Shown: in pieces, positions 25,400-50,764 of the stretch
Layout: the number at the start of each line of letters is the position of its first letter
Position numbering within the stretch: the first letter of the stretch is position 1
Sequence record: OV032902.1
Reading direction: 5' to 3' (one strand)
DNA length: 64,000 nt
Position numbers and translations under genes: made by a program
Notes under the pieces: generated by a model
Told to the model about the DNA's origin: nothing
What the model saw: the letters and a program-made list of their open reading frames with translations, nothing else
Databases searched by the model: none

Positions 25400-25957
25400 A
25401 TGGCAACTGCACAACTAACTAACAAAGACGCGCTAGAAGTAGCAGCGAAATACGATACGGGTTACAGCGCTCGTAAACTTGTGGCTTGTTACCACGAAAC
25501 AATTGCATTCCTAATGGAAAGACAACAAGACCTAACACTTAAAGGTATTGGTGTATTCCGTTTCAAGAAAGCAACTGCTAAGCGTCATGCTTACATCTCT
25601 TTCAAACCATCGCGTACTCAAGTGTCTAACGACCCTGCGAAGATGACTCAAGACACTCCGTTCGATGAAATGCTCTTCATGCTTGCAGAGCAACTCAAGC
25701 ACGATAAGTCTAAGATCCTCGAAGATTATGCGGCAGCATTCCTTGCGTTCTGTGCGTTAACTGTAGCATTTAAAGAAGATGCTCCGGTCCGCATTATTAA
25801 CGGCGGTGAATTCCGAGTTGTTGAAAAATACTATGGCGTAGTTCGCGGCAAAGAAGTGAACGGTGTACGCTACGTATTTAAGCATCACCTGACTCTGAAG
25901 AAGGACGGCGATACTAAACCTGGACCTTCTAAGCGTCACCAATTCGGTAAGAAGTAA
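25400..25957 (+). CDS. Protein with two tandem HU/IHF-like domains
   Basis: LTLKGIGVFRFK...ISFKPS and VRIINGGEFRVVEK mirror the HU V.L.GFG.F....FKP pattern, each preceded by helices; basic C-terminus. Confidence 0.55.
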   Translation: MATAQLTNKDALEVAAKYDTGYSARKLVACYHETIAFLMERQQDLTLKGIGVFRFKKATAKRHAYISFKPSRTQVSNDPAKMTQDTPFDEMLFMLAEQLKHDKSKILEDYAAAFLAFCALTVAFKEDAPVRIINGGEFRVVEKYYGVVRGKEVNGVRYVFKHHLTLKKDGDTKPGPSKRHQFGKK

Positions 25958-26649
25958 TGTTAGTAAAACACGTTGAAGTAAATCCAACGCAACTGAAGAC
26001 GATCGACTGTATCTATGACGGTCGTTTTCAAATCTCTGAAGAAGCATTTTACGATAGTCAAGAAGATATCGTATATGCGTTTCCTGCTGATCAGACCCTC
26101 GACAATATCTTCTTAGAAGACATCGAAGGTTTACCAGCGGGACGCATTAGTGCTCTTCTACTATACGCTCTAGCTTGGCGTCCTATCCCGTACATTAAAG
26201 ACGAAGACTTACTAGACCACACCAAAGGTTTACGTATTGTTGCTTCGTCTGCGGGCGCAGTCCGAGTTGGACGTTTTGTATGGAAGTTCGAAACTCCTAT
26301 CCCACATGCTTTTCATTCTACGTTTTATCACGTACCTGGTATTTCTAATATCTTGGTGAATGAAGCAGGCGGTATGAAAACCACTTCCAATGTCGACATC
26401 ACGTTGTCTGCTAACCATGGTTACAACGTTATGGTTTCTGATGATCTCGACAATTTGTTTGAGGTACATGCAAGCGTTCTAGTCGCTAGTGCATTCAATG
26501 GTATTTATATGCCGGATGCAGAATTGATTCGATACATCGATGGCGATGAAACAAACTTTGCACGCTCTAATGTAGCTTACGGTACAGCTTATCTTCCTGA
26601 GAAGGTTGATGCGCGAAACGATACCGACCCAATCTATCTAGTACAATAA
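25957..26649 (+). CDS. Degenerate NUMOD4/HNH-like protein
   Basis: FYHVPGISN..VNEAG (NUMOD4-like) and VHASVLVASAF...IRYIDGDETNFARSNVAY, an HNH_3 pattern with His and Asn ligands replaced. Confidence 0.55.
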   Translation: MLVKHVEVNPTQLKTIDCIYDGRFQISEEAFYDSQEDIVYAFPADQTLDNIFLEDIEGLPAGRISALLLYALAWRPIPYIKDEDLLDHTKGLRIVASSAGAVRVGRFVWKFETPIPHAFHSTFYHVPGISNILVNEAGGMKTTSNVDITLSANHGYNVMVSDDLDNLFEVHASVLVASAFNGIYMPDAELIRYIDGDETNFARSNVAYGTAYLPEKVDARNDTDPIYLVQ

Positions 26650-29463: not shown

Positions 29464-30132
29464 ATGAAAAAAGGAGAAATTTTTAAATCTTTGTCCTATG
29501 GTGATTTTATCATTATTGATGCAAAAGATTGCATGAAAGTAAAAATACGTTTTGTCGATACTGGAACATATAGAATCGTCCAAGCAGGAGCAATCAGAAA
29601 TGGACGAGTCAGGGACCCATATCGTCCGATTTACCATAATCGTGGTTTCTTGGGAGATGGTCATTACAACAGTCATGTACATAAAGAACTTTTTAGACGA
29701 TGGGTGAAAATGATCTCCAGGTGCTACGATAGCAAGGACAAAGACTTTCCGCGATATGGACTAAAAGGCATAGTTGTTGCCTCGACATGGTTTAACTTCC
29801 AAAATTATGCCAGCTGGGTTCATAGTAACTTACTTGACATTGGAAAAGACTTAGATGACCTAAAGCTATTTCATATCGACAAAGACTTAAAGTCCGGACC
29901 AATAAAGACATATGGCCCTGACACATGTACACTGTTAACAATTAAAGAAAATTCGTCAATGACAACCCCTAGAAAGTCTAGGAAGATAACACTTGTTTCT
30001 CCGGAAGGAAAGTTAGTCTGTGACGAGATTAGTAATTTGTGCCGCGATTTTAAACTGACTAGATCCAAAGTCTATAAACTCATAAACAAAACCGCCAGTC
30101 ATCACAAAGGCTGGAAACTACACGGCGCCTAA
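29464..30132 (+). mobile_element. Free-standing HNH homing endonuclease gene
   Basis: RWVKMISRCY...RYG..GI.V...WFNFQNY..W...HIDKDL...YGPDTC...EN pattern plus NUMOD1-like C-terminus; AT-rich codons (AAA, ATA, AGA) unlike its neighbours. Confidence 0.8.
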
Positions 30133-32256: not shown

Positions 32257-32351
32257 TCTAATACTGTGGACCAATCCGAATTAAATAATTAAAGACAAGT
32301 TAGAAGTCTCGTGAAAATGTTGAAGTGCGTCAACAACACGAGGAAAAGACG

Positions 32352-32750
32352 ATGTCTGAAATTACGCAATTCAACGGTATGGTATTAGAAACAATCACTA
32401 AGATTGTAGGTTTAGAAAAAGAGTCTGATTGTGTAGAGATTCACACTGCCTCTGGCGATGTGCATGTATTCTATCACGAACAAGACTGTTGTGAGTATGT
32501 AAGATTAAATGATTTCGAAGGAGATGCAGAAGACTTTGTCGGAGCATTGATAACGGATGCATTTGAGATTACTGATTACAATGATACTTGTGATGAGGAA
32601 GGCAGTGACGAAAGTTACACCTGGACCTTTTACAAGATTCAGACCAACAAGGGTGAATTGTGGATGCGATGGCTAGGCGAGTCTAATGGGTACTACTCAG
32701 AAGAAGTAACTTACAATCATCGCAAAGCAAAACACCGCAAGCTTAATTAA
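32352..32750 (+). CDS. Widely conserved acidic phage hypothetical protein
   Basis: Start ATG 32352; YHEQDCCEYV.L.D..GD, SYTWTFYKIQTNKG and RWLGESNGYYSE form a motif set common in large phages. Confidence 0.8.
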   Translation: MSEITQFNGMVLETITKIVGLEKESDCVEIHTASGDVHVFYHEQDCCEYVRLNDFEGDAEDFVGALITDAFEITDYNDTCDEEGSDESYTWTFYKIQTNKGELWMRWLGESNGYYSEEVTYNHRKAKHRKLN

Positions 32751-32756
32751 GAGATG

Positions 32757-32810
32757 CTCTCCTACCTTCGGGTAGGAGAGTAATCTTATTTATCCTTTCT
32801 TTTTTCTTTT
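32757..32810 (+). terminator. Rho-independent terminator
   Basis: CTCTCCTACC-TTCG-GGTAGGAGAG followed by a T-rich tract. Confidence 0.85.
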
Positions 32811-32923: not shown

Positions 32924-33871
32924 ATGACTGATAACTATATCCGTCCGTTTTCGGTAGCATGGTATGCGAACATGCATAAGCAAGGGCAGAACATCTCAGA
33001 AGATAGTTTAACGGGTTTCCCAGAACTCGTAGCCACTGCTGGTCTAGAAGACCATGATGAAACCAAAGCCTACCCTCGCAACTCGCTTGCATACAAGTCT
33101 GGCGCGCTGTTTCGTTCAAATAGTAACATTCCTGCAAACACTCCGTTTGTTGAAGGTCACGATGACCTAGAATGGACTAACGTTTCAGAAGCTAAGACAC
33201 TTATTCCAAACCATAATACCTCGGCTACATATCAAAAAGATATGCCGGTGTATTACAACGGTATGATCTATCGTGCGAAATCAGATAACCTAACAGGTGT
33301 CTTTGCTCGCGCGCAATGGGAGCGTATCTCTCAGCCACCTATGCGTCAATTCCTTGGTGCTGGTGATGCGGATACAATCCTGACTCAGGCTTATGCCTTA
33401 CAAGAAATTATCTTTGCAGAAGACCGTACGATTAACGGCATCAAGTTCTTTAATGGTGACCGCGTTCTAATTAAGAATGACCTAAACGGTTCCTTTGCAA
33501 CTTCTGATTTCTATTACTTTCCATTTGATGTTGCTGAGCAACCTCAGACACCACAAGATAGTACGGATAGTGTTCTTACTGGTACAATTGGCCAAGACGT
33601 TGACTTCTTCTTCGTTATCGCTAATGGCGAAGAAATTACTCTTAATACCAACGTAACAGATAAGATCGCATGGGCCACAACTGGCGCTGCTTACACAGGC
33701 AGTGGCTCTATTACTAAGATTGTTTACAATAACGATCTTATGGGCTCTAGCCAAGTTCTTGAGAAAGACACTGATTACACAATCAAGTCAGGTACTAACA
33801 ATGTGATCGTTCTGACTGACATTGGTCTAGAACCAGATGACACACTTGTTGTGACCTTTAATAACTCATAA
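32924..33871 (+). CDS. Putative tail/appendage protein with one CBM5/12-like module
   Basis: TYQKDMPVYYNGMIYRAK....VFARAQWERI; heads the structural fibre operon. Confidence 0.65.
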   Translation: MTDNYIRPFSVAWYANMHKQGQNISEDSLTGFPELVATAGLEDHDETKAYPRNSLAYKSGALFRSNSNIPANTPFVEGHDDLEWTNVSEAKTLIPNHNTSATYQKDMPVYYNGMIYRAKSDNLTGVFARAQWERISQPPMRQFLGAGDADTILTQAYALQEIIFAEDRTINGIKFFNGDRVLIKNDLNGSFATSDFYYFPFDVAEQPQTPQDSTDSVLTGTIGQDVDFFFVIANGEEITLNTNVTDKIAWATTGAAYTGSGSITKIVYNNDLMGSSQVLEKDTDYTIKSGTNNVIVLTDIGLEPDDTLVVTFNNS

Positions 33872-33882: not shown

Positions 33883-36800
33883 ATGGCTATTATTAGAAAA
33901 GCTCTCATTAAGTTTTATTTGACTAAAGCTGAAGCAGCGACTGCAAATGAAACTCCGGGCGACATCGGTTACTTTAGTGACGGTGCCCCTGCCGGTTGGT
34001 TTGAAGCCTCAATCGATAATGGAAATCCTGCTGTCGATGGTAATACGCTACAAGGTAGTGAATCTAACCTTTACTGGAAGCGTATCGTTAATGCGGAAAC
34101 TGAAGCTCCTACTCCGGTTCTTGTTCCAGATGCTTATGCGGAAGGTACTGCTTATCAACAATACCAAATCGTTGAGTCTGGTGGCAAGCTGTACGTTTGT
34201 GATTCTGCTCACACGCCAACCGCTGCTGAAGTAACTAGCCTTGCTAAGGTTACTGAACTTGGCACGGGCGCAGCTGGTATTGCTGATGTAGTCGCTGTGG
34301 AATACAAAGCCACCGAAACATACAAAGCATTTGAGCTTGTTTACATCGGCACGGATATCTTTGTTACTTCTTCTGCGCATACTGCCGATGCAGATAACGT
34401 AACCAACAAAGACCAGCTTATCCAGCTTAATGGCGGTGGCGGTTCTTTGGATGAAGTAGTTGCAAAAGAATACGTAGCTGCTACGCTATACAAGGCATAT
34501 GAACTAGTGCGTATTGGTAGCGAAATCTTTATCTCTGGTTCAGAACACACGCCAACCGCTGGCGAAGTAGCTGACAAGTCTAAGCTTATCCCAATAAGTG
34601 AAGATAAAGATACTGGCCCTGGTGTTCATACATCAGTGGCTAACGAAACTGATTACCGTAAAGGCGATGTTTTCAAACTAGCTAACGGTATCTTCATGCT
34701 TAAGGTTGACTTCACTACTGATGCAAATGCTACTGATGCAGAAGTAATCGCACAGTGTGAAAAGCTAGCTGGTCCTGAAGCTTCTGTTCGTACTTCGTTT
34801 ACCAATAGTACTGATTACTTCAAAGGCGATTTCTTTATCTTTGATTCTGGTACTTACCGTGTTAAAGCTGACTTCCAGACCGATGCAAATGCTACTGAAG
34901 CAGAAATTATTGCAGCGTGTGATAAGCTTTCTGGCCCTACTCAGAAAACTTATGCAGGCTTCCCTGCATCAACTGCATTCAGTATCGGCGATATTGTTAC
35001 TGAAGATGACCGCAGCTATGTAGTTAAAACGGCGTTTAGTACTGGCGCGTCAGACAACACGGTCACTGATCAAGAAACTAACCTTCTACCTTTGTTCGCA
35101 GAGCATTTGGTTCCACGTGTGTATAGTAATGGCGCAGTACTTAAAGAAAACGAAATCTTTGAGTATGGCGGTAACCTTTACTTTACTCCTAACTCGGTTG
35201 ACGGTACGTCTACTAACCAAACAACTTGGGCGGAAATTGAATCAAGCTGCATCCTAGTTGCTCAGGTTCCAGTAACCGCAACTCCTGATTTCGTAGCAGC
35301 TAACACATACAACGCCAATGATGTTGTTAAATTCGACGGACTAGAATGGAAGCTTACTGGTACGCACACTGTCAATGATCCTATTGACTTGACTAACTGG
35401 TCTCGTGTTATCACAACAGGCGTTAACCGTGGTGAGCACAAAACAAACCATGTTTACTTGAAAGACGACATCGTCACAAGGAGCGGCATTGCTTATAAGG
35501 CAAACGCTAATGTGGACGACACCGTTAGTTTCGCCGAAGGATTATCAGGCGCGACCTTTATTCGCCTAGACACAGCAGTGTTCGATGGACTGTCTAATTC
35601 CAAGGTTTATATAGTAGGCGATATCGTTTCAGCCGGTACGGCATCGTATGCAGTACACACTGCTTACAAGTCTGCTGCCGCTGCTACTGAAGCAGAGCTA
35701 GCTGCTAACTCTACATTGATTGCAACCAGTATCGAAACTTACTTGCCTACATACACAAACGGTAGTGCATTGAAGAATGGTCAATTGTTCTTCTATGATG
35801 AAGCTGTTTATCGCGCAGACGCGGATAAAGATGGTACAACTGCTAGCGAAACCACATGGGCTGAAATCGAAGGCGAAATGACGTTCTTGTTTAGCTTTAA
35901 GGTTGAACCGGCTCCTGCTGCATGGGCTAAGGCTAACGCTTATGCTGTTGGCGATAAAGCCACTTATGCTGGTCAGGTTGTAGTTGCTACTGCTGCATCT
36001 GCTGCTAACGACGAGTTCTCGTATAGTGATTGGACCCGTGAATTGGATTATCCTTACAATCAGGGCGATCACGTAAACGGCCGTGCTTACATGAAGGGCG
36101 ACGTAGTCTTTATTGATAGTGTTGAGTACATTGCACGCTCTAATGTTGATTCTGATGCCGGTGCTTCCGAAATCAAACTAGGCGTGTCTTCTGACTTCTA
36201 TCGTTTGACTCCGACCACTCATAGTGATCTAGTTGCAGACACTTTATACTCTAACTTTGATATCGTTATCAAAGAAGGCATTACGTATCTTGTAACGACT
36301 CCTATTCTTACAACTAGCTCTACAACCTGGAATGACCTTGTAGCGAACATGACTGTGGTTGCAGATAACTCTGCGTATGCGGTTCGTGAATACGTTGCAG
36401 AAGAAGACCTGAAGAAGTACGAGTTTGTCGTAGAGCCCGCAACAGGTGACGTTTACGTTACAACTAGTGCTATTGCCGGCAACGCAGGTAACACATTCCA
36501 AATCGTTAAAGACAACGGCGTTCGCGTAGCTGAATCTCCAGTTACTCCTGTTCCTGACTTTGACGCTGGTGAGCTATATACAGAGAACGACGAAGTTCGT
36601 TTCGAAAGTATGGTGTACACAGCTAAAGACCAAACAGGTCGTTTAGTAAACGATGCATTTAGCCTTACTTACTTTGAGCGTAACATTCCTGCCGGATTTA
36701 AGTTCGGTGACTTCGTAGCCAACAAGTTATACCTAAACGGTGACTTTGTTACAAATGGCGGCATAGAATACAAAGTTAAAGCAACTGGTACTTTTGCCAC

Positions 36801-39800
36801 GTTAACTGAAACTAATACTACGTTTGAGCGTACAAGTACAATCTTCAAGTTTACCCTGGAAGCAGCGAAGCGTTACATCCCAGGTGACTTGCTTTACTTG
36901 ACGAGCGGTGCTTACTACGTGCGTAACGAGTTTACGACTAACAACCCTGCTGATATTGATGACCACGCAGCCGACATTTATGTCATTGCTGAGAAAGATC
37001 ATCCTCCAGTAGAAGAGTATGTTCCTACTCAAGATGGCGAAGAGTTCAAGTTGATCGTTCATAATGAAGGTCTTTACTTCATTAAGACGGCCTGGACTGC
37101 TGATGTATCTAACGCAGATAGTGCTAACTGGACCAATGATACTTTTGACAAGATCAAAGGCAACCTAGTTGAACTTGTTCCTCAGAAGAATCCTACTCCA
37201 ATTGCGTTTGTTCAGGCTGATACATACCAAGAAGACGATTATGTTTCACATGATGGTTTTAATTGGCATCGTAATGACTCTACGACTCGTAAGGGTGGTG
37301 ACGCATTCAGTCTAGATCACTTCAATCGTGAAGAAGCTGGTGGTCAAAATCGTGGTACATTTACTTCCGGTCAACACTACTTATCTGGCGATAAAGTGTT
37401 CGACAACGGAATTGAATATCGTGCTAATACATTGATCAACTACGGCGATGTAACGGTATTCGTTGAAGGTCTGGGCTTACAAGAGTTTGTTCGTATTACT
37501 CCAATCGTTCATCAAGGCTTTGCACCAGATACACTTTACATTCGTGGTGACTGGGTAATTGAAGACGGCGTTACATACTACGTGCAACCTGTGACTTTCT
37601 TTGAGTCTGGCGCAGCTGAAACACTGGCTGAATTTGAAGCACGTAATGAGGTAGAAGTGATTGCGGACCACCGCATCCTTAATCCTCGTGAGTACGTTGC
37701 CAAAGATAATGCCGAGCAAGGCGAGATCATTCAGTACCAAGGTTCCGTTTACTACGTTACTACGGCGTGGGTTTCAGATACTACGGATGCTGATGCGGCT
37801 AACCATGTTAACCATGAATGGGATGCAGTTAAGGATAAAGTCGTTGCGCTTTACCAAACACCTGCCCCAGTACTTCCGGTATTTGATGCAGCCACTGCAT
37901 ACAATGCCAATGACGAAGTTCAGGATAAATATGGTTTAGTTTGGACTCGTCGTAATGTTGCAGACGGAACAGCACAACCATTGACTGAAACTCACTGGAC
38001 GCGTAATGATGCTGACCCGCAGATCTTCGAACATATTCCTGATCGCGAGTACACATACCTGCCTAACGACAAGATTAAATACGGAACATCTTACTTCCAC
38101 TTTAATCTAGCCAATGACCTTGCTTCGGCGGATATTGATGAATGGGCTACGTGGCTAGAAGCTAACACTCGAATCGAACCTACCGGCGAGATTAAGATTG
38201 TGGCTGGCAACGGGAGTCTGACCGGACTTGAGTATGTTGCACCTGGTCAACTAGTAAGCTTCCTAACGGACGGCACGCTTAATGGCCTTCAAGGCAAGCA
38301 AGGCGAAACATACGTTATTACGTCTACGATGCGTTCTACCACTCTTAACAAGGCATACTTTGTTAAGATTGCTGAGAAAGCTAAACTGGCAACTGCATTT
38401 GATGCTACGGCGACATATGCAACTGGTGACTTAGTTACTATTGCCGAAGATAGCTTTACTTATGAGCTAACCGGTACGCACAATGTTAACGATGCGTTTA
38501 ACTTGACTAACTGGTCTCGTGTAGAACCAGCACAGCACCGTGGTGCACATAGCGATGCAGTTTACTATATCACCGGTGATAAGGTTACTAATGCTGGCAA
38601 AGAGTACGAAGCTCTTGGTCCTATTAGTAAGACAGCTTTTGCTGAAGGCATTGCAGGTAATACATTCAAGCGTGTTACTCAAAACGTTGCTGCTTCTTTA
38701 ACGGCTGACATGTTCTATGTTGAAGGCGATATCTTTAACTTGAATGGTTATGACCTAGAAGTAACTGCTGCGTTCCAAGCTGATGCTGACCCAACGTTCG
38801 CTGAGAACATTGCTAACATGCAGGCAATCAACGTAGATGAGAAATACTACTTGGCTGCTGCTGACGGCGTAGCGTTCCATGACTACAACAAGAAAGAGCA
38901 TGTGTTTATCTTCACCGAAGATCGCTCGACTGAGTTGTTTAATGGTTTCACACCTATGACTGGCGACCGCATGGTTCTTAAGCGCGACCGTACGGCTACG
39001 AACAACCCTCCAATAGCGGCTGACTTTGATATCTTCCTAGCGAAGCAAATCGAAGATGCTATTGAGCCGCATGATGATGGCACTGCTTACTTGACTGGCG
39101 ACAAAGTAACTTACCAAGGTTTTGTTTGGACTTCTACTGAAGCTCAATCGGCTCTTGTTTGGGACTTTACTAAGTGGACTCGTGACCTGCCTGGTGGTGA
39201 ACATCGCGGTACGTTCAGCAATGCTGTACACTACCGTACAGGCGACACCGTAACCCATCCTGATGATGGTGCTTTGTATGCAATCAATTCTAACGTTGAT
39301 AGCGTAGCTGCATTTAACATCGGCTCACTTGCGGCAGAATGGACGCGTGTTGGTCCTGGTATCTTCACGGATGCCTCGGTCGTGGCATGGAATACTCAGT
39401 TCTTTAAAGGCGATCGTCTATACTTCGGTAAGCAGTACCGTACTGTAACAGAAGACTTTGCGATTGGTGCTGACCCTGCCGATGGCTCTGTTCCTGAACT
39501 GGATGAAACCAAGCTTCGCATCGAAGGTCGTTGGGACCGCTCTAACGTTCGTACTGTTACGGCAGACGAGTCTGTTAGTGCAGAAGAAGTTGTTCGCTAC
39601 GGCAACAAACTTTACTTTGTGTTTGCTGACTATGTGCCAAGTGACCCTGTGGTTGCTGCCGAGCTAGAAGCGAAGATTTACGAACTCGTAAACTTTGAGT
39701 CCACTCAGCACGAAGCATACGATGCTGCCAAGATATATGCCGAAGGCGATATCGTTTCTTATCAAGACGAAATCTTCCAGCGTACTAATGATACCATTGG

Positions 39801-40938
39801 TGATGCAGGTAACTTTACTGCTGCTCGCTGGACTAAGTTGTCTGAGAAGAGTGTACGTACTGCTGGTGTTCTAGCAGACATGAATGACTGGTATGTTGGT
39901 GTTGATGACATAGTTCACTATCAAGGCATTACACTTACCGCTAAGGTAGCTCGCGGTGTTGATGAACTCAAGATTCCTTTCGATGATACTAAGTTCGATC
40001 GTGCTGGTAACTTTGTGTTTAATACGGCATTCTCTTACCTTGGCAGACGCGCTCTAATCAAAGGTGACTTTATCATTGACGGTCGTAACATGTATTTTGT
40101 TACAGCTGCTTTTGAGGTCCTTGATGGCGAGTCTTGGGATAATGCTCTTCGTACACATCAATCTAGCTTCCGCTTAGTCGGTGACTATGAGTTACTTGAT
40201 TGGCAAGCAGATACTTTCTATCGTACTGGTGACCTTGTTAAAGTACAGGGTTATGAGATGGTAGTAGTTGCTAACCATACTTCAGCTTCTGCTTGGAATA
40301 CTGGTGAGCTTCTTAAGTTTGTGTTGCGTGATCAGCCTACTTACGGCTTTACGATGGAAGCTACTGACTTCATCCCGGCTGGAACTAAGTTTGATACTAA
40401 CGGTGATGATGACTCAAGCACAGCACTGCCGTTTACTATTACTGGCACGGTTCCTTTGGCAAACATAAATCTGTTACTTCAAGTCGGTTTCCGCTTCTTT
40501 GTGAATAAGACTGATATCACAGACGCTATTGTGGTCGATGGTTCGGATGCAACGCTCTTTGATATGGGCAGTATCTTCCTTGAAGCTGGAGATGTCTTAG
40601 AGATTGCTGGTTACCAGAATGGCGAAGGTACAAGTATCGCAGAAGTAGTCCAAGGTGGTTATGCTGACCTAACAGTTACTCCTACGACAGCTAATGTTTC
40701 ATTGACGGATGCTAACAAAGGTCAAGTCATTGACATTACTGCGGCGATCACAGTAACTGCTGCTGGTGGTACTACTGGTTCTACATGGACTGTTGTTAAC
40801 CGTTCAGGCGGACAACTAGCTGTTACACTGGGTACTGGTATTACGGCGATCGGTAACGTTAACGTTCAGGATGGTACAGCGATTACTCTAGTTATGCTAG
40901 ACGCTACGACTGTGCTTATTGCTGGTGGTGTTGCTTAA
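33883..40938 (+). CDS. 2351-aa fibre/appendage protein with about 35 CBM5/12 (ChiC_BD)-like modules
   Basis: Repeated Y..GD.V...G..(Y/W)...W units counted by eye, e.g. WAKANAYAVGDKATYAG, HDDGTAYLTGDKVTYQGFVW, WQADTFYRTGDLVKVQG; tail-fibre-like C-terminal beta domain. Confidence 0.75.
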   Translation: MAIIRKALIKFYLTKAEAATANETPGDIGYFSDGAPAGWFEASIDNGNPAVDGNTLQGSESNLYWKRIVNAETEAPTPVLVPDAYAEGTAYQQYQIVESGGKLYVCDSAHTPTAAEVTSLAKVTELGTGAAGIADVVAVEYKATETYKAFELVYIGTDIFVTSSAHTADADNVTNKDQLIQLNGGGGSLDEVVAKEYVAATLYKAYELVRIGSEIFISGSEHTPTAGEVADKSKLIPISEDKDTGPGVHTSVANETDYRKGDVFKLANGIFMLKVDFTTDANATDAEVIAQCEKLAGPEASVRTSFTNSTDYFKGDFFIFDSGTYRVKADFQTDANATEAEIIAACDKLSGPTQKTYAGFPASTAFSIGDIVTEDDRSYVVKTAFSTGASDNTVTDQETNLLPLFAEHLVPRVYSNGAVLKENEIFEYGGNLYFTPNSVDGTSTNQTTWAEIESSCILVAQVPVTATPDFVAANTYNANDVVKFDGLEWKLTGTHTVNDPIDLTNWSRVITTGVNRGEHKTNHVYLKDDIVTRSGIAYKANANVDDTVSFAEGLSGATFIRLDTAVFDGLSNSKVYIVGDIVSAGTASYAVHTAYKSAAAATEAELAANSTLIATSIETYLPTYTNGSALKNGQLFFYDEAVYRADADKDGTTASETTWAEIEGEMTFLFSFKVEPAPAAWAKANAYAVGDKATYAGQVVVATAASAANDEFSYSDWTRELDYPYNQGDHVNGRAYMKGDVVFIDSVEYIARSNVDSDAGASEIKLGVSSDFYRLTPTTHSDLVADTLYSNFDIVIKEGITYLVTTPILTTSSTTWNDLVANMTVVADNSAYAVREYVAEEDLKKYEFVVEPATGDVYVTTSAIAGNAGNTFQIVKDNGVRVAESPVTPVPDFDAGELYTENDEVRFESMVYTAKDQTGRLVNDAFSLTYFERNIPAGFKFGDFVANKLYLNGDFVTNGGIEYKVKATGTFATLTETNTTFERTSTIFKFTLEAAKRYIPGDLLYLTSGAYYVRNEFTTNNPADIDDHAADIYVIAEKDHPPVEEYVPTQDGEEFKLIVHNEGLYFIKTAWTADVSNADSANWTNDTFDKIKGNLVELVPQKNPTPIAFVQADTYQEDDYVSHDGFNWHRNDSTTRKGGDAFSLDHFNREEAGGQNRGTFTSGQHYLSGDKVFDNGIEYRANTLINYGDVTVFVEGLGLQEFVRITPIVHQGFAPDTLYIRGDWVIEDGVTYYVQPVTFFESGAAETLAEFEARNEVEVIADHRILNPREYVAKDNAEQGEIIQYQGSVYYVTTAWVSDTTDADAANHVNHEWDAVKDKVVALYQTPAPVLPVFDAATAYNANDEVQDKYGLVWTRRNVADGTAQPLTETHWTRNDADPQIFEHIPDREYTYLPNDKIKYGTSYFHFNLANDLASADIDEWATWLEANTRIEPTGEIKIVAGNGSLTGLEYVAPGQLVSFLTDGTLNGLQGKQGETYVITSTMRSTTLNKAYFVKIAEKAKLATAFDATATYATGDLVTIAEDSFTYELTGTHNVNDAFNLTNWSRVEPAQHRGAHSDAVYYITGDKVTNAGKEYEALGPISKTAFAEGIAGNTFKRVTQNVAASLTADMFYVEGDIFNLNGYDLEVTAAFQADADPTFAENIANMQAINVDEKYYLAAADGVAFHDYNKKEHVFIFTEDRSTELFNGFTPMTGDRMVLKRDRTATNNPPIAADFDIFLAKQIEDAIEPHDDGTAYLTGDKVTYQGFVWTSTEAQSALVWDFTKWTRDLPGGEHRGTFSNAVHYRTGDTVTHPDDGALYAINSNVDSVAAFNIGSLAAEWTRVGPGIFTDASVVAWNTQFFKGDRLYFGKQYRTVTEDFAIGADPADGSVPELDETKLRIEGRWDRSNVRTVTADESVSAEEVVRYGNKLYFVFADYVPSDPVVAAELEAKIYELVNFESTQHEAYDAAKIYAEGDIVSYQDEIFQRTNDTIGDAGNFTAARWTKLSEKSVRTAGVLADMNDWYVGVDDIVHYQGITLTAKVARGVDELKIPFDDTKFDRAGNFVFNTAFSYLGRRALIKGDFIIDGRNMYFVTAAFEVLDGESWDNALRTHQSSFRLVGDYELLDWQADTFYRTGDLVKVQGYEMVVVANHTSASAWNTGELLKFVLRDQPTYGFTMEATDFIPAGTKFDTNGDDDSSTALPFTITGTVPLANINLLLQVGFRFFVNKTDITDAIVVDGSDATLFDMGSIFLEAGDVLEIAGYQNGEGTSIAEVVQGGYADLTVTPTTANVSLTDANKGQVIDITAAITVTAAGGTTGSTWTVVNRSGGQLAVTLGTGITAIGNVNVQDGTAITLVMLDATTVLIAGGVA

Positions 40939-40951: not shown

Positions 40952-40988
40952 CCTCTTCCCCTTGTGGGAAGAGGCTTTCTTTTTCTTT
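40952..40988 (+). terminator. Rho-independent terminator
   Basis: CCTCTTCCC-CTTGT-GGGAAGAGG followed by CTTTCTTTTT. Confidence 0.85.
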
Positions 40989-40996
40989 AACTTAAT

Positions 40997-41008
40997 TAAA
41001 TCGTATAG
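40997..41008 (+). promoter_or_regulatory. Candidate late promoter, AAATNNNRTAG class
   Basis: TAAATCGTATAG directly after a terminator; similar words at 32813, 49046, 51793, 55735, 7467 (+) and 7422 (-). Confidence 0.45.
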
Positions 41009-41060
41009 GTCTCACGACCTTTCTAACGTTAGAAAACTAAAACTCAAAGAGGATTATAAC

Positions 41061-42134
41061 ATGTCTTATAATCAAAGTCTTATAAAAGATCTGCGATTCG
41101 AAACAGTCGCAAAAGCTCAGTCGCGAGACTCTCGCGGCAAGCAGGCATTTATTGTCGAAAAGGGTCTTTGGTATCATGGCGTAACTGTTGCTAACGGAAC
41201 AGCCGATGGTATAGCGGACGATGACCTTTATATTGCTACTCCGGTAACAGACGTATTCTGGAAAAAGCAAGAAGGCGGCGAAGGCGGCGGTGCTCCTTTA
41301 CCTGCTACAGGTGAAGCTGGTGCTCCTGCGGATTCCACTCCTTCTTCTATTGCGCCTACTGTAACGTTTGCGGACGTGCAAGGTAAGACAGCAGCCGAAG
41401 CTCTAATGGCGCTTCACTTCCCTGCTACGGTTCCTACTCAGACGCTACCAACAGTAACACTCGGTCTGTTACCTATTACTATCGCTAAAGGCTCGGCACT
41501 ACCTGGTAACTTGACTTCTAATTTTGTACAAAATAATGGTGGTGCTAAGAACGGCGACTATAATTTAGTTGTTAGTGATAGCGGCGGCGAGCTTTTCAAT
41601 GCTAACGCATCCGACGGTGCTTTTGACATTTCTGCGGTAGTTGAACTTCAGAGCCTGCAAGAAACTGCAACGTTTACGCTGTCAGTGGATTATGATGCTG
41701 GCCTAGTGCCAAACGATAGCTATGGCAATCCATCACCTAGTGATCAGGTAGCGGCAGGTACTGCAAGTATTGTATTGACTGTTACTCCTACACTTTCTAT
41801 TCATCACGGTCTACAGGCCAAAGGTGAAGATCTTACTGCGAAGACTTCTACAGAACTTCGTACTATCGCAAATGCTCTTACAGCTGCGGCTGATGGTACT
41901 GCGGTATTCACAAACGTAACCATTCCTAATACGAGTGATTACTACTTCCTCATTCCTGGTGTTAAGACTACTGTGACAACTGTTTCACAAGGCTTCACAA
42001 TCACAGGAATCGCTTCTGTACTCGGCCAAGTAACTATGGACGATGCAGCAGGTACAGAGAGCTCGACTTACACGCTTATTAAACTAGCGGGTCAAGCGGC
42101 TCAGTCAGTTATTGATACTGTAACTATTAGCTAA
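41061..42134 (+). CDS. Putative virion structural/fibre-associated protein
   Basis: Start ATG 41061 (GAGGA RBS); GKTAAEALMALHFPATVPTQTLPTVTL motif seen in large-phage structural proteins; beta-sandwich-like composition. Confidence 0.65.
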   Translation: MSYNQSLIKDLRFETVAKAQSRDSRGKQAFIVEKGLWYHGVTVANGTADGIADDDLYIATPVTDVFWKKQEGGEGGGAPLPATGEAGAPADSTPSSIAPTVTFADVQGKTAAEALMALHFPATVPTQTLPTVTLGLLPITIAKGSALPGNLTSNFVQNNGGAKNGDYNLVVSDSGGELFNANASDGAFDISAVVELQSLQETATFTLSVDYDAGLVPNDSYGNPSPSDQVAAGTASIVLTVTPTLSIHHGLQAKGEDLTAKTSTELRTIANALTAAADGTAVFTNVTIPNTSDYYFLIPGVKTTVTTVSQGFTITGIASVLGQVTMDDAAGTESSTYTLIKLAGQAAQSVIDTVTIS

Positions 42135-42145: not shown

Positions 42146-45100
42146 ATGAGTTATGTAACTAATTTCCCTGGTGGCTTTCAAAGCTCTACAGATAAGCCTC
42201 TAGATTACCGTGCTGTGGTAGACGACATCTCAGCACTAGAAGCAGTTGTGCTTCAAACTGTTTATATCGGTCTAGTTATCTACGATAAAGCGACTGGCAA
42301 ACACTATGAGATCAAGGGTACGGATGGTACACAAGCTGGTCTTGTTTACTCTGTCTTTGGTCAAGGCAGTGATTCTGATTCTGCACTAGCCGATATCATT
42401 ACTACTCGTAATCCAACTAAGAGTGATGACGCTGACTCTTCTGAGTTTACAGTCAACGCCCTTACAAGCTGGTTAAACAAAGACACAGGTGAGCTGTTCC
42501 TTTGTACGGACAACACTGCGGGTGCAGCTAATTGGATTCGTTACGTTACCGAAGGTGACTTGACTGGTTTAACTCCTGGTAATACTTTTGTCATCGAAGA
42601 ATTAAACATCCCAGTTAATGCCCCAGCGGACAGTAATTACGAATTTAATATCAGTCTTCCAAATCTGACTGCGTATGTCAATTCAACTATAGATCTTTTC
42701 GTCAACGATGAATTGCTTGTGTCGACTCCATTAGTGATGAATACCGATGATTATGTCATTACGGCTCCATTGAAGAAAAACGATAAAGTCGAATTTCGAA
42801 TGGGTCTATCTGGCAATGTGCCTATTGAGGTTCTGGGCCTTGGTAATGGTTCAGAGGTTGCAGAATTTCTTCCAAATGGCGATATTATCTCGGCTTCGAG
42901 TGCGTCTTCCGATCCTGACATAAGAAGAATAAACACTAAAGACGGAACGATTAGTAGTGTTATTGAAACCGGGTTGCCGAGTGCTTTTATTTCGGAATCA
43001 GGCTCAATTAGATTAACTGTCGATTCAGAGGGAACTTTGTTCGCGTCTAGAAATTCCAGAACTTCCGATGAGATTTATTTTCTTAAATTAGGCAGTAATT
43101 CATGGGAAACATTAACAATACCAGAAGGAGCGATAACATGTAGATGGCTATCGATGTATGACGAAGATCATCTTTTAAATGTTGATTCGGACAATCAGCT
43201 CCTTCAAAAGATCAATAAGGTCACCGGTCAATCGTCGCCAGTCTCTAATGTTCCTGGTACGATTGCTACTAACTGGAGATCCAGATACGTAGGAAACGGC
43301 CAGCTTTTGTTCACACGAGGAACTAGCCTAGGACCTATTCTTTTTGATACGGTAAATGAAACAACACTCATAGATTTTTGGGCAACTGCCGGAGAAATCG
43401 TTTTTGGTTCGAATGAGCAGTTTTACGGTGGCGATAAAGTAGAAGATGATGTTTTCATCTTTAACACATTGAACATGGATAATCACTATTTATGCCGAAA
43501 AGGAAAATGGGAAATCGACGCAGGTCCTTTAAATAGTTCCCGCAATGTTGCTGTTTCTGACCTAGGTGTTTATTTTTATCCTGCTGCTTCGACTACATTG
43601 GCTTCTACACTGCGACTTTATTCGCATGCTGATAGCTTCCGTGCTTCGGCCTATGCGGAACCAACTGCTTACTTTGCACCTACTCTAGATCTTGCTTTTG
43701 GTATCTTAGAGACACGCGACCCGATTGAAACAGATGATTCTGCTTCCGTTACTTACGATATCGCAGTTAACCAGACTTGGAAGAATGAAACAACAGGTTC
43801 TGTGTTTGTTTGTGCGGATGCAACTCCTGGCGCAGCTGTTTGGAAGAAGTACGTAACAGAAGATGAGCTTCCAGGTAAGTCTACGCTTAACCTAATGCGC
43901 TTCCCTGAGTTAAGAGTTTCAGTTGATTTGGAAACCGCCGTTCCAGACGAAACTACACCGCATCAATTTTCAACTCTTGATCTTACGATCCCTAAAGACG
44001 GTAAATATCACTTAGGTGGTAGCTTCCCTATTTCAGGTCTTAACCTTCCTCCGATGAGTACAAGTCAAGCAGGTAGTGCTATTACTAACTTCTGTCTTGA
44101 TTTGATGTTGTTCCGCGATAGTACATTGAGTCCTCTAGTTCGTGGCGATATTTCGATCATGACTAACGACGTGACGCAGGATAACTATGACTTCTTTGGT
44201 AAGGCAAGCTTTGATGAGATCTTGGATCTTAAAGCAGGCGATGTTCTAACGTGGCAATTCTACACCACTTCAAACATCCCACCTACGGCAGATGCATTCC
44301 TGTTCATTAACCCTACAGATGGTAACTCTGTTGCGTCTCAGGGCCACAAGTCAGCTCCGTGGCTGCGTGAACTAGAAGTAGCTACTTATCTTCCTGCTGG
44401 TGATTACACGTACGGTATCAAGTCTACTCGTGACCCAGGTCCAACGGATGATGAGAACTCTACTGACTTCGCTATTGCGATTAACCAAGTATGGTTTAAC
44501 GAAACAAATGGTAAGACATTTGTTTGTCAAGACGCTACAGCGGACAATGCAGTATGGAATGCTTACGTAACAGCTGACCAAATCCCTGGCTTCCAGGATA
44601 CTCAGTATGTTTCATTGACAGATGTTACTCAATTCGCCACTGTAAGCGAAACAGCACTTCACCGTTTTGGTATTACACTAGCTGGTACCGATCTATCGGG
44701 CGCTACCCTGTGGATGACTGTTAATGGCAATGATGCTATTCAGTTTGATTTGAGTGGTCTAACGGGTGCCGGTACACGCATGTACTCTACGGACCAATTT
44801 ACGGCTCTTAACAAAGATGACGTGATTGCATTCCGTTGGGTTCCTAATGGCGCTGTTATTAGTTCGTTTGGTTTTGCTGGTGGTATTCAGCCAACTACTT
44901 ACTATGCTCCATTGAAAGACTTTGAACTAGGTATCAAGGAAACTCGTGACCCTACTCCAAATGATGACGAAAACTCTCCTGGTTTGTTTATTCAAGTAAA
45001 CCAAATCTGGCATAACGAAGCTACGGCTTCTATCTTTGTATGTACAGATGCTACTGTGGGAGCGGCTGTTTGGAAGCGTATGGTTACAGAGAATGACTTG

Positions 45101-48100
45101 CCTGGCTTTGACGATACTAGCACTTTTTCTTTGACTGGTCCAGATGATGTTTTTGTTGCTCCTCATGACAGAGACTATACGGCGGAAATCAGCATTTCTG
45201 GTTTGAATCTGGACAAAGTGGATTTCTGGGTAAAAGTAAATGACAGTGCGGTTTTCACTTTAAGTTCTTCTGATATTTCACCAGGCAATACATCGGCACT
45301 TGCAACAGTTCCTCTTTCTTTGAGTACTGGAGACTCTGTTAGTCTGGATTATACGAATAAAGCCGAACTAACTGATATTACTGGAAACCTCCCAACGTCT
45401 GCCACTGGTGCGATATATATTCTAGGTAATTACTATTACAATGTAGATCCAACAAACAACGAACTTAGACGTGCGTCAGTGAGTAATACTTCATCATGGA
45501 CTGATAACTGGACCACTCCTAACGGACAGGTTATCAACATGACTAGTGCTGATGTATACAACGCACAGTTTAGCGAAGGTTTTCTTTTTGTCATAGATAG
45601 AACTACTGACAAACTTTATCGCTTCGACAAAGAAGGCAATGCCAATATATGGGAAAACTCGGGACTAGAATCAAACACTAACCCTATATACTTTAGCTCC
45701 GAAGATCGCCAAACTTATCTATGGGATACTGCCAATAAAATCATTGAACGCTCTACGGGAAGTTCTGGTGCCTGGAGTACCGTTTATAATGCAAACAATG
45801 ACCCAAACAATACTACTAATACTCTTGATTTCATGGAAGCAGTTAACGGAGAAATTTATTTCCTTAGTCGCACCGATGGTGTACTGAAACGTGTCGTAAA
45901 TACTAACCTGTCAGTAGACGTAGGCACGGTGGAAAATCCAGCTGAAGTAATTGGGTCACTCACTTTCGGCTTTGCGGCCGAAGAAATGAATCAATTTATT
46001 TTTGGAGATAGAAGTGGAGATAAACTTGTCACGTATAACTACGTGACCGGAGAATGGGCTTACGAGTCATACTATACGGATGGCAATTATCGCTTAGAGG
46101 CACTTCCCGCTGGCCTGCACTCTTTCGGTCGCTTATTCTTTGATAGCGACTTAGAACGATTATTCCTGGTAGATAACTTCGGTAAACTTACATGGCTAAC
46201 TGAGGGATATAATTTTGGCGGCATGTCGCGAGCTAGAAGTTTCGATGAAGGCATTGCAGTGTTTTACGATACTTTGTCGCAACCTGGTGATACATATTAC
46301 CGTGCAGACTTTGGTGTAATCACGGGAATTACCGTTTCTTCTAAGTCAGAACTTCGTGGTACGTATATCCCTACGGACCAATTCGAATTAGGTATTGTTA
46401 CTGATCGTGACCCTACTGAAACGGATGATGCTGATTCAACTGAGTTCTTCGTTGTTCAAAACCAATACTGGCAGAACACCGCCAATGGTTACACATGGAT
46501 CTGTAAAGACGCTACGCCTGGCGCAGCTGTTTGGAAGAAGCATGTAACAGAAGATGAAATCACAGGTATTGACTTTACTGAGTCTTATGCTCTGGTGATT
46601 CCTGAAACCGTTAATCCTACGACAGCTGTAGAAAGTGACCCTGTCACGATTACGGAAGACAAGACATATCGATTTGATATTCGTTCTCGTATGCAGGTTC
46701 CTCGTGGTAAATCAGTTACTGTTGAGGTATTGAAGAATGATGCAGTTGTATGGTCTAATACTCAGACTACGTATAACTACTCTGATTCAGTAGAACTTCC
46801 AGTGGTTACAGACGACATCGTTAAACTTCGTGCTACTTTGTCTGATACAAACCGCTGGCATAACTCAATGACTAACATTACTGGTCCTGCTGTTACATTC
46901 GGCGATAGTCGTGGTGCTGCTGCAACTCGTGACTTTGTAATGATGGTTGAGTCTAGTAATAACAGTATTCTGTTAGCTGGACGTGACGACGAGTGGGTTG
47001 ATGTCTCGAACGAAGCACTTGCTCCTACATGGTCACAGGTATATGGTATCACAGCCGACGAAGAATCGTTCTATGTTATCGACCGTGGTCTAGATCAAAT
47101 CTGGCAACGTCGTAACGGTGGCCTATGGTCACAGATCGATGGTCATACATTTACTGATCTGTTTGACATTGCTTATGCACAAGGCAAGCTTTACTGTCTT
47201 GATGAGGCATCTAATAGCGGCGGTAGCTCAATTGAAGTTTACGATATTGAGAATGATAGTTGGAGTACGCTTACTTATACTGGCCTTCCTACGATAGCCA
47301 ATGCTCGTGGTATGACAGTTGACCCTGATACAGGTGATGTTTTCTTGTATGACACTGGTGCGACCAATAAAGAAATCTTCAAGTTTACAGCTGCGACGCA
47401 GACCTGGGCAGCCTGGGCAATGACTAACCGTGGTAACCCTAACCATTATCCTTTCCACATGACTATTCATGACGGTAAGCTATGGTACGGTGACATGGAT
47501 GAAACTAACGTTATTCGTACTATTCGTACGATTGACTTAGTAACAGAAGTTCATGAAGACTGGGGTGCTGCTAACGGACAGAGTGATGATCTAAGTCGTC
47601 ATATTCGTGGTATTGCTTTCCGTGATGGCAAGCTCTACGGTGGTGACTTGTTGAATGATACTATTTGGTCATTCGAGACATACAAAGTCGGTCCAGCATC
47701 GGCTGGTTTCGGTACAGCTCCTCGTGCGCATTACTTGCCTGCAAATGAAATCAATGTCGGTATTAAGGAAACTCGTGATCCTACGGAAAACGATGATTCT
47801 TCAAGTACTGATTACGATATCAAGGTTAACCAGCTATGGTTGAATGAAACCAATGGTTCTTTCTGGATCTGTAAGAAAGATACTTTGGGCGCGGCAGTTT
47901 GGGCTCGTTTCTCTACTGATACAGAAGAGATCCCGCCTATCGGTCAGCGTCTGGATGTCGAAGGTGGTCGCCTAATCTCCAATAACGGTGTTTACTGGGC
48001 AAACGATGCATCTAGTGCAGGTACAGCGGCTAACCAAGCAGTTGTTGCAGAAGACGTTACTTGGTTCATGTTCCATTCTTGGGACGATGACATGATCGAA

Positions 48101-49090: not shown

Positions 49091-50764
49091 ATGTTCTTTA
49101 CTATCTTACCTGGCATAATTCACCAGGATAAAGTTATCCGAGAAAACAGTGGTGTTTTACCCACTACGCCGGATGCTGTAGATACTGCGGTACTAGCAAT
49201 TGATACTTCCGCAGATACCGGTACCCAAGGTGACTGGACTACAAGCGCAGCAGTAATTGTATTCGAAGCTACAAATGTAGATAGTCGTGCAACTGCTGTA
49301 GAACTTCACAGTGACACTGCAAAGATAGGTGACTTTACCGAAGCAAATGGTCGCTACCTATATAGTTATAATAACCCTCAGGATGATTCCAAGGTTAGCT
49401 TCAAGATTGTAGTCAAAACACCGGACGGTGATACTGAAACCGCCCTGCAAGAAGTTACTATGGAAGCTCCTGCTCCTGTGGCAAACTATAGCTATATTAA
49501 CTATTACAGTTCTTGGGCTACTAGTTGGTTTAATGCCGCTAATGCTGTTGACCCTAATCATCGTCGTATGGCAAATACTCCAGGTTACTTTAGTGATATC
49601 ATGATTGCTTTCGTTCGTCCTAATATGACCTTCGATAAAACAGCCCCAGACATCACAAGAGTCGCTACAGGCCTGGATTATCCTAATACTGGACCTACTC
49701 CTCATGAAGGTCTTAAGGATGACGTAGAGAAAGCACAGGCCAAAGGACAGAAAGTTCTTGTCTCCGTTGGTGGTGCTACTTATGGTCGTCCTGATATTTC
49801 TGATGCATGGCAAAACATGTATGATGAAGCTAAGTACATTGCTACGGCAGGTACGGGTTCTATTAACCGAGTTAACACACCAACAATGCAATCAATGATT
49901 GAGTTTATTGAGTACTTCAATCTAGATGGCATTGACTTGGACTTTGAGGATGACCCGGCATGGTGGGACGGTCATACAGTTGGTACTACACGATGGCAAA
50001 AGTATCTAGATGTTTATTATCATCTATTGATGTTTAACCATTATGTTGCCGACAGAGCTGCTGCTATCCTAGGCAAGCCTATGGAGAAAGGTACGGCTTG
50101 TTGGTCTACTGGCTGGCACGTTACTCCGGATACCAATGCCGATGTTGCAACTCCAAATGCGTCACATGGTCTTACTTCTGTGTGGGGTGGGCGTGCAGGT
50201 CGTGAGCGTGCAATGTTCGGTGGCTTTACTCATCCGGAACTAGGTGCGGTTAATGCTCGTAACTTTGTGACTAAGTACATTAACATGTCTTATGACTTTG
50301 GTCCACTTGGTAGCTACGCTGATGACACAGAAGCTTTAACTAACGACGTAACATACGACCCAATCAATGTTTATGTTGAGGCTCGTGAAATAGTGACAGA
50401 CATTGATTCAGTTATGACTGTAGGTATCTGTCCTGAGCCTTTCGGATGGCAAGCCGATGGTTCTAAGATGATGGTTAAGGACGCAGACTGTGCTCCTTCT
50501 GGTAACCATCGTACCCGATTATATCGTGACGGCTACAACCGCGTAATCGACAAGCCATTCTCTGCTGAGAACCTGGCCACTCGATTCTTGGATGTAGTTG
50601 GTAATAATGTAAACGATGGCTTTATTTTGTGGGCTGGTTACAAAGTTGCTGGTACTTATACTTATAACGGTACTCCTTCTGCTAACGCTACAACGGCGTC
50701 AAAAGAAATCGCACGAGTACTTGACCTCGCCGATAAAGACAACTCGCACGATATTCATACGTAA
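49091..50764 (+). CDS. GH18 chitinase-like glycoside hydrolase with N-terminal Ig/PKD-like domain
   Basis: YYSSW, IMIAFVRP, KVLVSVGG, catalytic LDGIDLDFE (DxxDxDxE intact), INMSYD, GFILWA; AGGAG RBS; no signal peptide. Confidence 0.9.
   Translation: MFFTILPGIIHQDKVIRENSGVLPTTPDAVDTAVLAIDTSADTGTQGDWTTSAAVIVFEATNVDSRATAVELHSDTAKIGDFTEANGRYLYSYNNPQDDSKVSFKIVVKTPDGDTETALQEVTMEAPAPVANYSYINYYSSWATSWFNAANAVDPNHRRMANTPGYFSDIMIAFVRPNMTFDKTAPDITRVATGLDYPNTGPTPHEGLKDDVEKAQAKGQKVLVSVGGATYGRPDISDAWQNMYDEAKYIATAGTGSINRVNTPTMQSMIEFIEYFNLDGIDLDFEDDPAWWDGHTVGTTRWQKYLDVYYHLLMFNHYVADRAAAILGKPMEKGTACWSTGWHVTPDTNADVATPNASHGLTSVWGGRAGRERAMFGGFTHPELGAVNARNFVTKYINMSYDFGPLGSYADDTEALTNDVTYDPINVYVEAREIVTDIDSVMTVGICPEPFGWQADGSKMMVKDADCAPSGNHRTRLYRDGYNRVIDKPFSAENLATRFLDVVGNNVNDGFILWAGYKVAGTYTYNGTPSANATTASKEIARVLDLADKDNSHDIHT

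Follow-up and report, generated by a model that had tools for sequence, protein, structure and literature searches.

Is a giant phage protein that features dozens of small modules resembling chitin-binding domains a glycan adhesin, or do the modules serve mainly as the building blocks of a fibre? The question is raised by a gene at positions 33883..40938 (+) of a 64,000-nucleotide stretch of sequence record OV032902.1, which is referred to here as the window and is 100% identical to the DNA of Vibrio phage vB_VpaM_sm033 (OV032902.1, 320,253 bp, Caudoviricetes; sm033 below). The gene is intact and consists of a single open reading frame (ORF) with zero internal stops, encoding a protein of 2,351 amino acids (aa) with a mass of 256.5 kDa and an isoelectric point of 4.4. 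It corresponds to SM033_00299 in the GenBank record, where it is labelled 'tail fiber protein'. A preliminary description of the sequence had proposed a very long appendage built from carbohydrate-binding modules (CBMs) of the CBM5/12 type. The protein is best explained as a very long virion fibre of the tail-fibre class of this jumbo Vibrio myophage, with a probability of roughly 0.55, in which the CBM-fold modules would mainly form a long segmented shaft, the N-terminus would act as an anchor, and the non-repeat C-terminus would carry the specificity.

Architecture and predicted fold of the module array

The protein features an N-terminal non-repeat region (aa 1-84, 33883..34134), a long array of modules, and a non-repeat C-terminus of 187 aa, all segments being encoded on the plus strand. 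The array begins with seven single modules of ~55 aa each (aa 85-469, 34135..35289) that are recognized by a core hidden Markov model (HMM) with E values of 2e-13 to 2e-10. HMMs of the four module classes A, B, C, and D assign these seven modules to D, D, a tie between D and A, C, C, C, and D. The remainder of the array consists of cycles of a four-module unit, A-B-C-D, that is 211-225 aa long in every cycle except the short fifth one, and the first unit begins at aa 470, which is the point from which the preliminary description had seen ordered cycles. Anchored on the first module type, the cycles are super-repeat (SR) 1 (aa 470-680, 35290..35922, super-repeat HMM E 2e-78), SR2 (aa 681-892, 35923..36558, E 4e-73), SR3 (aa 893-1108, 36559..37206, E 1e-76), SR4 (aa 1109-1333, 37207..37881, E 4.5e-80), which is the copy that was modelled, SR5 (aa 1334-1505, 37882..38397, E 8e-38), SR6 (aa 1506-1729, 38398..39069, E 6e-70), SR7 (aa 1730-1945, 39070..39717, E 3e-69), and SR8 (aa 1946-2164, 39718..40374, E 1e-59), with the array ending at about aa 2164. 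SR5 is shortened to 172 aa, and both the alignment and the class test show that its B module is truncated and its C module is absent. There are therefore eight cycles in place of the six to seven counted earlier. Six cycles (SR1-4, 6, and 7) are whole and well preserved, SR5 is short, and SR8 is divergent.

The module total by position is 38, close to the previous estimate of about 35, and 32 of these are supported statistically by the union of two iterated core HMMs (15 + 27 modules) at a domain E<0.01. The same thresholds gave 0 and 1 matches in 50 shuffled copies of the protein. The fixed order of the module types was evaluated with leave-one-out class HMMs, which returned 23 of 31 modules to their positional class, compared with 25% by chance. 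The agreement is complete for A (8/8) and is 5/8 for B, 5/7 for C, and 5/8 for D, with the misfits falling mostly in units 5, 7, and 8. A self-comparison for repeats, which the preliminary description had suggested, revealed both levels of the hierarchy: self-BLAST of 150-aa fragments features diagonals at an offset of ~55 aa in the N-terminal fifth of the protein and diagonals at multiples of ~212-225 aa (211, 425, 639, 853, 1036, and 1260) from about aa 400 to 1850.

The relationship of the modules to CBM5/12, which had been recognized in the preliminary description, is supported by Pfam, by profile matches to the PDB, and by AlphaFold2 and Foldseek analyses of the A-B and C-D pairs. The whole protein scores 109.5 bits against the Pfam family CBM_5_12 (PF02839) relative to a cut-off of 26.2 (E 7.8e-32), a score that is the sum of many weak matches. 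When the modules are taken alone, 14 of the 38 have any CBM_5_12 match at E<=1 (1/7 N-terminal modules, 6/8 A, 5/8 B, 1/7 C, and 1/8 D), and the sole module above the gathering score is the last one of SR8 at aa 2107-2164 (27.8 versus 26.2 bits, E 2.5e-6). Most of the single-module matches are confined to the start of the 44-position profile, where they span its first 22-31 positions. The C, D, and N-terminal (N) types are joined to CBM5/12 through profile-profile comparison, which relates A to B at 94.5%, C to D at 93.5%, N to C at 96.3%, and A to C at 44%, and through PDB profile matches. At E<1e-3, the only chains retrieved by a profile of all 38 modules are CBM-bearing (8yfp at 3e-9, 4ilv, 3wx7, 1ed7, and 4tx8), where 8yfp is a Vibrio chitin-oligosaccharide deacetylase (COD) and 1ed7 is the binding domain of Bacillus chitinase A1. 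The profile of the seven N-terminal modules retrieved the CBM-bearing chain 4ilv (E 5e-5) as well as 1ed7. Additionally, the A-B pair aligns across the tandem CBM12-1 and CBM12-2 domains of Vibrio COD with an E value of 2.8e-6; the two-CBM12 architecture and the domain names of COD are those described in PMC12506485.

SR4 was modelled with AlphaFold2 using a shallow alignment that consisted of the eight units, and the model has a mean predicted local distance difference test (pLDDT) score of 76.3 and a predicted template modelling (pTM) score of 0.55. In this model A and B each feature a hairpin and a third strand, and C and D each feature a hairpin, a short helix, and a strand; a separate model of the C-D half has a pLDDT of 73.6. 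Each module is thus predicted to be a small domain with a three-stranded antiparallel beta core, as in CBM5/12. A Foldseek search of the PDB with the SR4 model placed the CBM12 pairs of Vibrio deacetylases at the top (E 2.5e-4, probability 1.0), with 104 columns of 3wx7_A aligned at 4.5 Å. The next ranks are the tail fibre of phage 7-7-1 (9RKV) and the receptor-binding complex of phage Milano (8FQC), and further ranks include a cyanophage tail fibre and a contractile-injection-system baseplate protein. The C-D model returned the same list, with the deacetylase CBM12 at a probability of 1.0, plus the binding domains of Serratia chitinase B (ChiB) and Streptomyces griseus ChiC. Structure prediction of one super-repeat, which had been named earlier as a check on the assignment, therefore gave a CBM5/12-type fold, and a non-CBM fold was not seen. 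A CROP-type or choline-binding beta-hairpin solenoid was rejected, as such folds were matched with a Foldseek probability of just 0.05-0.20 and E>0.02 and no Pfam match was obtained for them.

Age of the repeat and the protein family

No tandem repeat was found at the DNA level in the fibre gene, and the repeat is visible in the protein only. The sole DNA trace is a 58-nt stretch with 84% identity between SR1 and SR6. The eight units share pairwise identities of 15-31%, with a mean of 21.6%, and this divergence, together with the missing DNA repeat, rules out a recent expansion or an assembly artefact. The units are no closer to one another than they are to the units of P0002, a relative of 2,833 aa from a JGI metagenome (mean 23.8%, maximum 36% identity), which indicates that the array predates the split of these lineages. 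On the sequence comparisons, this pattern fits an array that has been maintained by selection for fold, order, and length.

The nested duplications that had been proposed for the protein are supported by the profile relationships among the module types. A CBM5/12-type ancestor may have given rise to two sub-types: A and B have the plain three-stranded form, and in C, D, and the seven N-terminal modules an inserted short helix precedes the third strand. Both sub-types would then have been duplicated to form the A-B-C-D unit, and the unit would have been amplified long ago. The array of P0002 (gene at 4646-13147 of metagenomic locus L002) has also undergone more recent duplications. Units 9, 10, and 11 of P0002 are 46-59% identical, and the similarity of units 1 and 3 (48%) and of units 2 and 4 (52%) suggests that a two-unit block was copied, which is an extra level of nesting that is absent from sm033.

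The four-module period is shared with relatives. P0002 features units of 199-222 aa in 11-12 copies, and P0003 (Logan, 2,571 aa) features a four-module period of ~200-220 aa in 8 units. The module types are also found in QAX97120.1 of phage vB_VmeM-Yong (1,444 aa) and in ORF141 of BONAISHI (AXH70882.1, 1,043 aa). The relatives differ from the sm033 protein in copy number and termini, their overall identity to it is 22-29%, and none has a described function.

No relative was found in the viral_contigs collection when the single fibre protein was used as the query. An exhaustive search with the unit profile identified 857 representative proteins at E<=1e-3, of which 257 are at <=1e-10 and 27 at <=1e-30. 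The family statistics given here were taken from the best 150 of these 857 representatives. Their median length is 1,032 aa, 16 proteins are longer than 2,000 aa, and the median number of modules per protein is 10. At least 30 modules were found in three of them only: P0002 with 38, the sm033 fibre with 32, and P0005 with 31. At least one near-full unit match is present in 81 proteins and at least two are present in 42, and such matches in distant proteins are no proof of the A-B-C-D order given that the four module types are interrelated. Among named organisms, the family is represented by hypothetical proteins in the Yong jumbo phages of Vibrio mediterranei and in Vibrio phage BONAISHI, which has been described as phiKZ-related (PMC6207643), and by one protein from a Telmatospirillum genome. 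A viral library of predicted structures (BFVD) gave 48 matches at E<=1e-3, mostly of 1,000-1,500 aa. These include proteins of Aeromonas phages Aeh1 and phiAS5 and uncultured-phage proteins of 980-1,490 aa that are labelled CBM5/12, ChiC_BD, or 'chitin oligosaccharide deacetylase'.

Within this family the number of repeats varies, and conservation extends to the N-terminus and to C-terminal domain 1. Residues 1-67 of the sm033 protein share 35-36% identity with the first 67-69 residues of P0002 and P0003, and the N-terminal non-repeat region is a putative attachment or adaptor region. C-terminal domain 1 (aa 2165-2241, 40375..40605) is homologous to the extreme C-termini of relatives and shares 25-35% identity with the last ~50-78 residues of P0004 (Yong phages), P0021, P0016, and P0014 (BONAISHI). 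C-terminal domain 2 (aa 2242-2351, 40606..40935), the candidate distal tip, has no relative among the 150 best family representatives and no significant match in the PDB, PHROGs, or Pfam. Neither the 84 N-terminal nor the 187 C-terminal residues have a significant match in the PDB, Pfam, or PHROGs; the best PDB match of the C-terminal stretch was a chain named 'Fiber' with a non-significant E value of 0.58.

Smaller module-bearing genes are found beside giant fibre genes in two of the related loci. In locus L004 the gene at 24153-26063 encodes a 636-aa product with matches to Mtd_N, CBM_5_12, and F5_F8_type_C, and in locus L006 the gene that follows BONAISHI ORF141 (12189-13796) has 2 core-module matches. 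This arrangement suggests that the modules are common to several fibre components.

Probable virion role of the protein and its gene neighbourhood

Assignment of the protein to the fibre class is supported by a PHROG match, the GenBank label, the phage-fibre matches found by Foldseek, and the location of the relative P0005 among Mtd_N tail-fibre genes. The PHROG match is to phrog_9851 'tail fiber protein' (E 3.1e-17, 5 stretches) and runs through the repeat modules, so that it reflects family likeness and says nothing on location. The match, the position of relatives beside Mtd_N genes, and a syntenic run of fibre-like genes support the view of the preliminary description that this is a very long appendage-type protein. 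In such a fibre the short conserved N-terminus would anchor the protein on the phage particle or on a partner protein, the 38 small CBM5/12-fold beta modules would form the shaft and give it length and reach, and the 187-aa C-terminus would be the distal, specificity-bearing tip. At a gain of 2-3 nm per module of ~50 aa, the fibre would be roughly 80-110 nm long. The modules would be chiefly building blocks, and a subset of them, mainly A and B, may keep a weak affinity for N-acetylglucosamine (GlcNAc) polymers that would provide avidity as a secondary function.

Several points weigh against a structural tail fibre. No virion proteomics or imaging was found in the literature for sm033, BONAISHI, or Yong, and we therefore infer the location in the virion; the literature search returned no paper mentioning sm033, one paper featuring the Yong phages, and a BONAISHI paper that contains no proteome for ORF141. 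No known tail-fibre anchoring, collar, or chaperone domain was found in aa 1-84 or aa 2165-2351 by Pfam, PHROGs, or NCBIfam. The confidence of the models is moderate (pTM 0.50-0.55), the Foldseek E values are only 1e-3 to 1e-4, and the TM-scores are low because the modules are differently oriented. Additionally, a purely structural shaft leaves an aromatic column in the A modules without an obvious explanation and gives no reason for the presence of a gene resembling glycoside hydrolase family 18 (GH18) in the same gene run.

These last two points speak for a rival explanation, which we regard as less likely, namely that the array itself is a multivalent lectin for chitin or GlcNAc-rich glycans, maybe acting with the GH18-like enzyme. 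Such a lectin would hold the virion on the chitinous particles inhabited by its Vibrio hosts or would make the first reversible contact with a surface polysaccharide of the host. The nearest solved relatives of the modules are the functional CBM12 pairs of the host genus's own deacetylases, and a column that aligns with a Trp of COD CBM12-1 has an aromatic residue in 5 of the 8 A modules of the sm033 fibre; across 23 A-type modules drawn from three proteins the share is 87%. However, the conserved aromatic residue is mostly Phe and may be buried, and the conserved columns of the modules could equally represent core residues. Trp is absent from 19 of the 38 modules, in agreement with the earlier caveat that many modules lack it, only the single module noted above passes the Pfam cut-off alone, and most of the Pfam matches end at position 24-31 of the 44 in the profile, ahead of the part that would contain the binding aromatics. 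Many weak sites in a row are the usual route to avidity in CBM tandems, which favours a lectin; the structural role of the same fold in the 7-7-1 and Milano proteins speaks against one. The literature search returned no paper on Vibrio phages whose virions bind chitin, or on the Trp used for binding by the Bacillus chitinase A1 domain.

The GH18-like gene (49091..50764, +) is located two genes downstream of the fibre gene and encodes a 557-aa 'hypothetical protein' that matches Glyco_hydro_18 with an E value of 1.3e-6 and features an eight-residue stretch that fits the GH18 catalytic signature DxxDxDxE. The protein is conserved at 38-39% identity in BONAISHI and the Yong phages, where the gene has a different genome position, and the first ~120-135 residues of the sm033 protein are specific to this phage. 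This gene would favour a lectin that acts together with an enzyme; however, its score of 28.7 bits is just under the gathering cut-off of 29.6, no match was found for it in PDB sequences or NCBIfam, it is not beside the fibre homologues in Yong or BONAISHI, and its co-occurrence with the fibre is confounded by the relatedness of these phages. The fullest form of the adhesin explanation is a virion-borne multivalent chitin adhesin that would concentrate the phage on the chitinous particles at which its hosts feed, in which degenerate modules contribute through avidity and the GH18-like enzyme acts on the same substrate, and this combination is doubtful.

Two further explanations concern the location of the protein. 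The fibre may not be at the baseplate and may instead be a 'hair' or whisker attached to the capsid, neck, or sheath, as on some jumbo phages. There are precedents in the long flexible capsid and sheath filaments of jumbo phage phAPEC6, the genes of which are unassigned (PMC7247149), and in the long capsid fibres of phage 7-7-1 (PMC12796354), and neither a baseplate-attachment domain in the N-terminus nor an adjacent baseplate gene is recognisable in sm033. A whisker is nevertheless unlikely, as PHROG and the structural comparison both place the protein near tail fibres or receptor-binding proteins, the gene of the relative P0005 has Mtd_N tail-fibre genes around it, and nothing positive ties the protein to the capsid. 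It is very improbable that the protein is not part of the virion and is instead a soluble or cell-associated infection protein that binds chitin or the cell envelope. CBM5/12 modules normally belong to secreted enzymes and P0002 is named 'chitodextrinase' by one source, but this name appears to be based on CBM matches alone, no catalytic domain was found anywhere in the 2,351 aa by Pfam or NCBIfam, and a structural protein is favoured by the size, by the conservation of the termini, and by the fibre-like surroundings of the gene. An identity as an enzyme ('chitodextrinase') was rejected, as Pfam revealed no catalytic domain.

The fibre gene is preceded by a 315-aa ORF (32924..33871, +) across an 11-nt gap. 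The product of this ORF features one A-B-like module pair at aa 44-137, which matches positions 1-95 of the super-repeat HMM with an E value of 1.8e-7, and shares 47% identity with the product of the syntenic gene of L002; no Pfam or PHROG match was found for it. A terminator-like hairpin (32755..32782, +) with a 12-bp stem, 6 GC pairs, and a T-rich tail is located upstream, directly 3' of the ORF at 32325..32750. A second terminator-like hairpin (40952..40974, +) with a 9-bp stem, 6 GC pairs, and a T-rich tail begins 14 nt past the fibre stop. Bounded by these two hairpins, the fibre gene appears to share a transcription unit with the 315-aa ORF, and the two are probably co-transcribed.

The run of genes for the 676-aa, 315-aa, fibre, 390-aa, and 2,282-aa products recurs in the same order in L002, the contig that encodes P0002. 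Along this run the identities are 67% for the 676-aa product, 47% for the 315-aa product, 26-29% for the fibre, 34% for the 390-aa product, and 26-33% for the 2,282-aa product, and the fibre is the fastest-evolving member. The neighbours of the fibre gene in the window feature only weak beta-propeller and coiled-coil signals in Pfam, with no assigned structural function.

The 676-aa ORF (27380-29410, +) at the start of the run has signals for a coiled coil and an alanine zipper, its C-terminus weakly resembles YadA_anchor (E 4.8e-4, under the cut-off), and it could encode a trimeric coiled-coil fibre component. An HNH endonuclease gene (29464-30132, +; phrog_2081, E 2.5e-47) sits within the conserved run. 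In L002 the homologues of the 676-aa and 315-aa ORFs are separated by just two small genes, with products of 127 and 182 aa, and tblastn gave no HNH match there; the HNH gene may therefore be a mobile insertion. Downstream of the fibre gene, the 390-aa ORF (40962-42134, +) has a mechanically assigned TTG start at 40962 that is inside the second hairpin. The GenBank start of this gene corresponds to window position 41061 (357 aa) and is a better fit; the product is related to a 356-aa protein of L002 and has no family match. The 2,282-aa ORF (42146-48994, +) features its own distinct internal repeat with units of ~55-130 aa that share 36-56% identity and are located near aa 84, 500, 750, 920, 1400, and 1860. 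It has weak Kelch or beta-propeller matches in Pfam, and its L002 counterpart (1,730 aa) has NHL/TEN_NHL matches.

Three observations were made on other genes. The annotated endolysin (23603-24514, +) matches PHROG endolysin families and also the 'chitinase' family phrog_14712 (E 1.5e-13). The BONAISHI genome features a 'glycohydrolase' gene a few genes upstream of the module-bearing ORF141. Lastly, a 553-aa ORF in the window (55772-57433, +) matches the Pfam EPTP repeat with 23.6 bits relative to a gathering score of 21 (E 5.4e-5), which is unusual in a phage protein.

Comparison with known systems

A phage fibre with glycan-type modules is not a new kind of protein. Phage tail proteins with single CBM5/12 domains have been recorded before (PMC12579547 is one example), and large 'CBM5/12' or 'ChiC_BD' phage proteins are already present in the viral structure library. 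As far as the searches reached, the super-repeat with its four ordered module types has not been described, nor have its age and extreme copy number. What is new is the scale and the order, with 38 modules and a four-type super-repeat that is older than the split from metagenomic relatives, in an uncharacterised family. If the modules bind chitin, the protein would represent substrate tethering by marine Vibrio phages, in parallel to mucus adherence, and would link the ecology of these phages to the chitin cycle. Without such binding, the protein would be a clear case of a carbohydrate-binding fold that has been reused as a fibre building block, which would help to annotate giant phage proteins that are now 'hypothetical' or misnamed 'chitodextrinase' or 'deacetylase'.

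The best profile and fold matches are the Vibrio CODs, which include V. campbellii VhCOD (8YFP/8YH4), the V. parahaemolyticus enzyme (3WX7), and V. cholerae CDA (4NY2/4NYU). The sm033 modules agree with the COD CBM12 domains in their small fold of three strands and in the core columns, which are Tyr, Gly-Asp, Val, Gly, and Tyr. The COD enzymes feature two modules on a CE4 catalytic domain, whereas the sm033 fibre features 38 modules without a catalytic domain. Additionally, in contrast to COD, half of the sm033 modules have no Trp, the C and D types feature the inserted short helix, and the relative orientation of the modules is different, with a root-mean-square deviation of 4.5-11 Å and TM-scores of 0.2-0.33.

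The closest phage proteins of known structure are gp015 of Agrobacterium phage 7-7-1 (9RKV) and gp124 of Agrobacterium phage Milano (8FQC). Both are trimeric receptor-binding proteins that match the model with a Foldseek probability of 0.97-0.99, and both give weak profile matches at residues ~30-120, although the sequence E values of 0.38-0.7 are not significant. According to the papers on these two proteins, the matching region is within the N-terminal anchoring or tail-binding part, and this location provides a precedent for a structural use of the fold rather than a lectin use. The proteins of 7-7-1 and Milano are 587 aa long and feature few such modules, which are followed by a beta-helix and a jelly-roll tip, unlike the 2,351-aa sm033 fibre. 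The Ig-like decoration domains of the T4 Hoc type offer a further comparison, as they are known for 'adherence to mucus', and tandem small beta domains that are displayed on a virion could bind weakly and multivalently to glycans of the substrate on which the hosts live. The likeness of the sm033 fibre to T4 Hoc is a functional analogy only, with an Ig-like fold on the capsid in Hoc and a CBM5/12 fold on what is presumed to be the tail in sm033.

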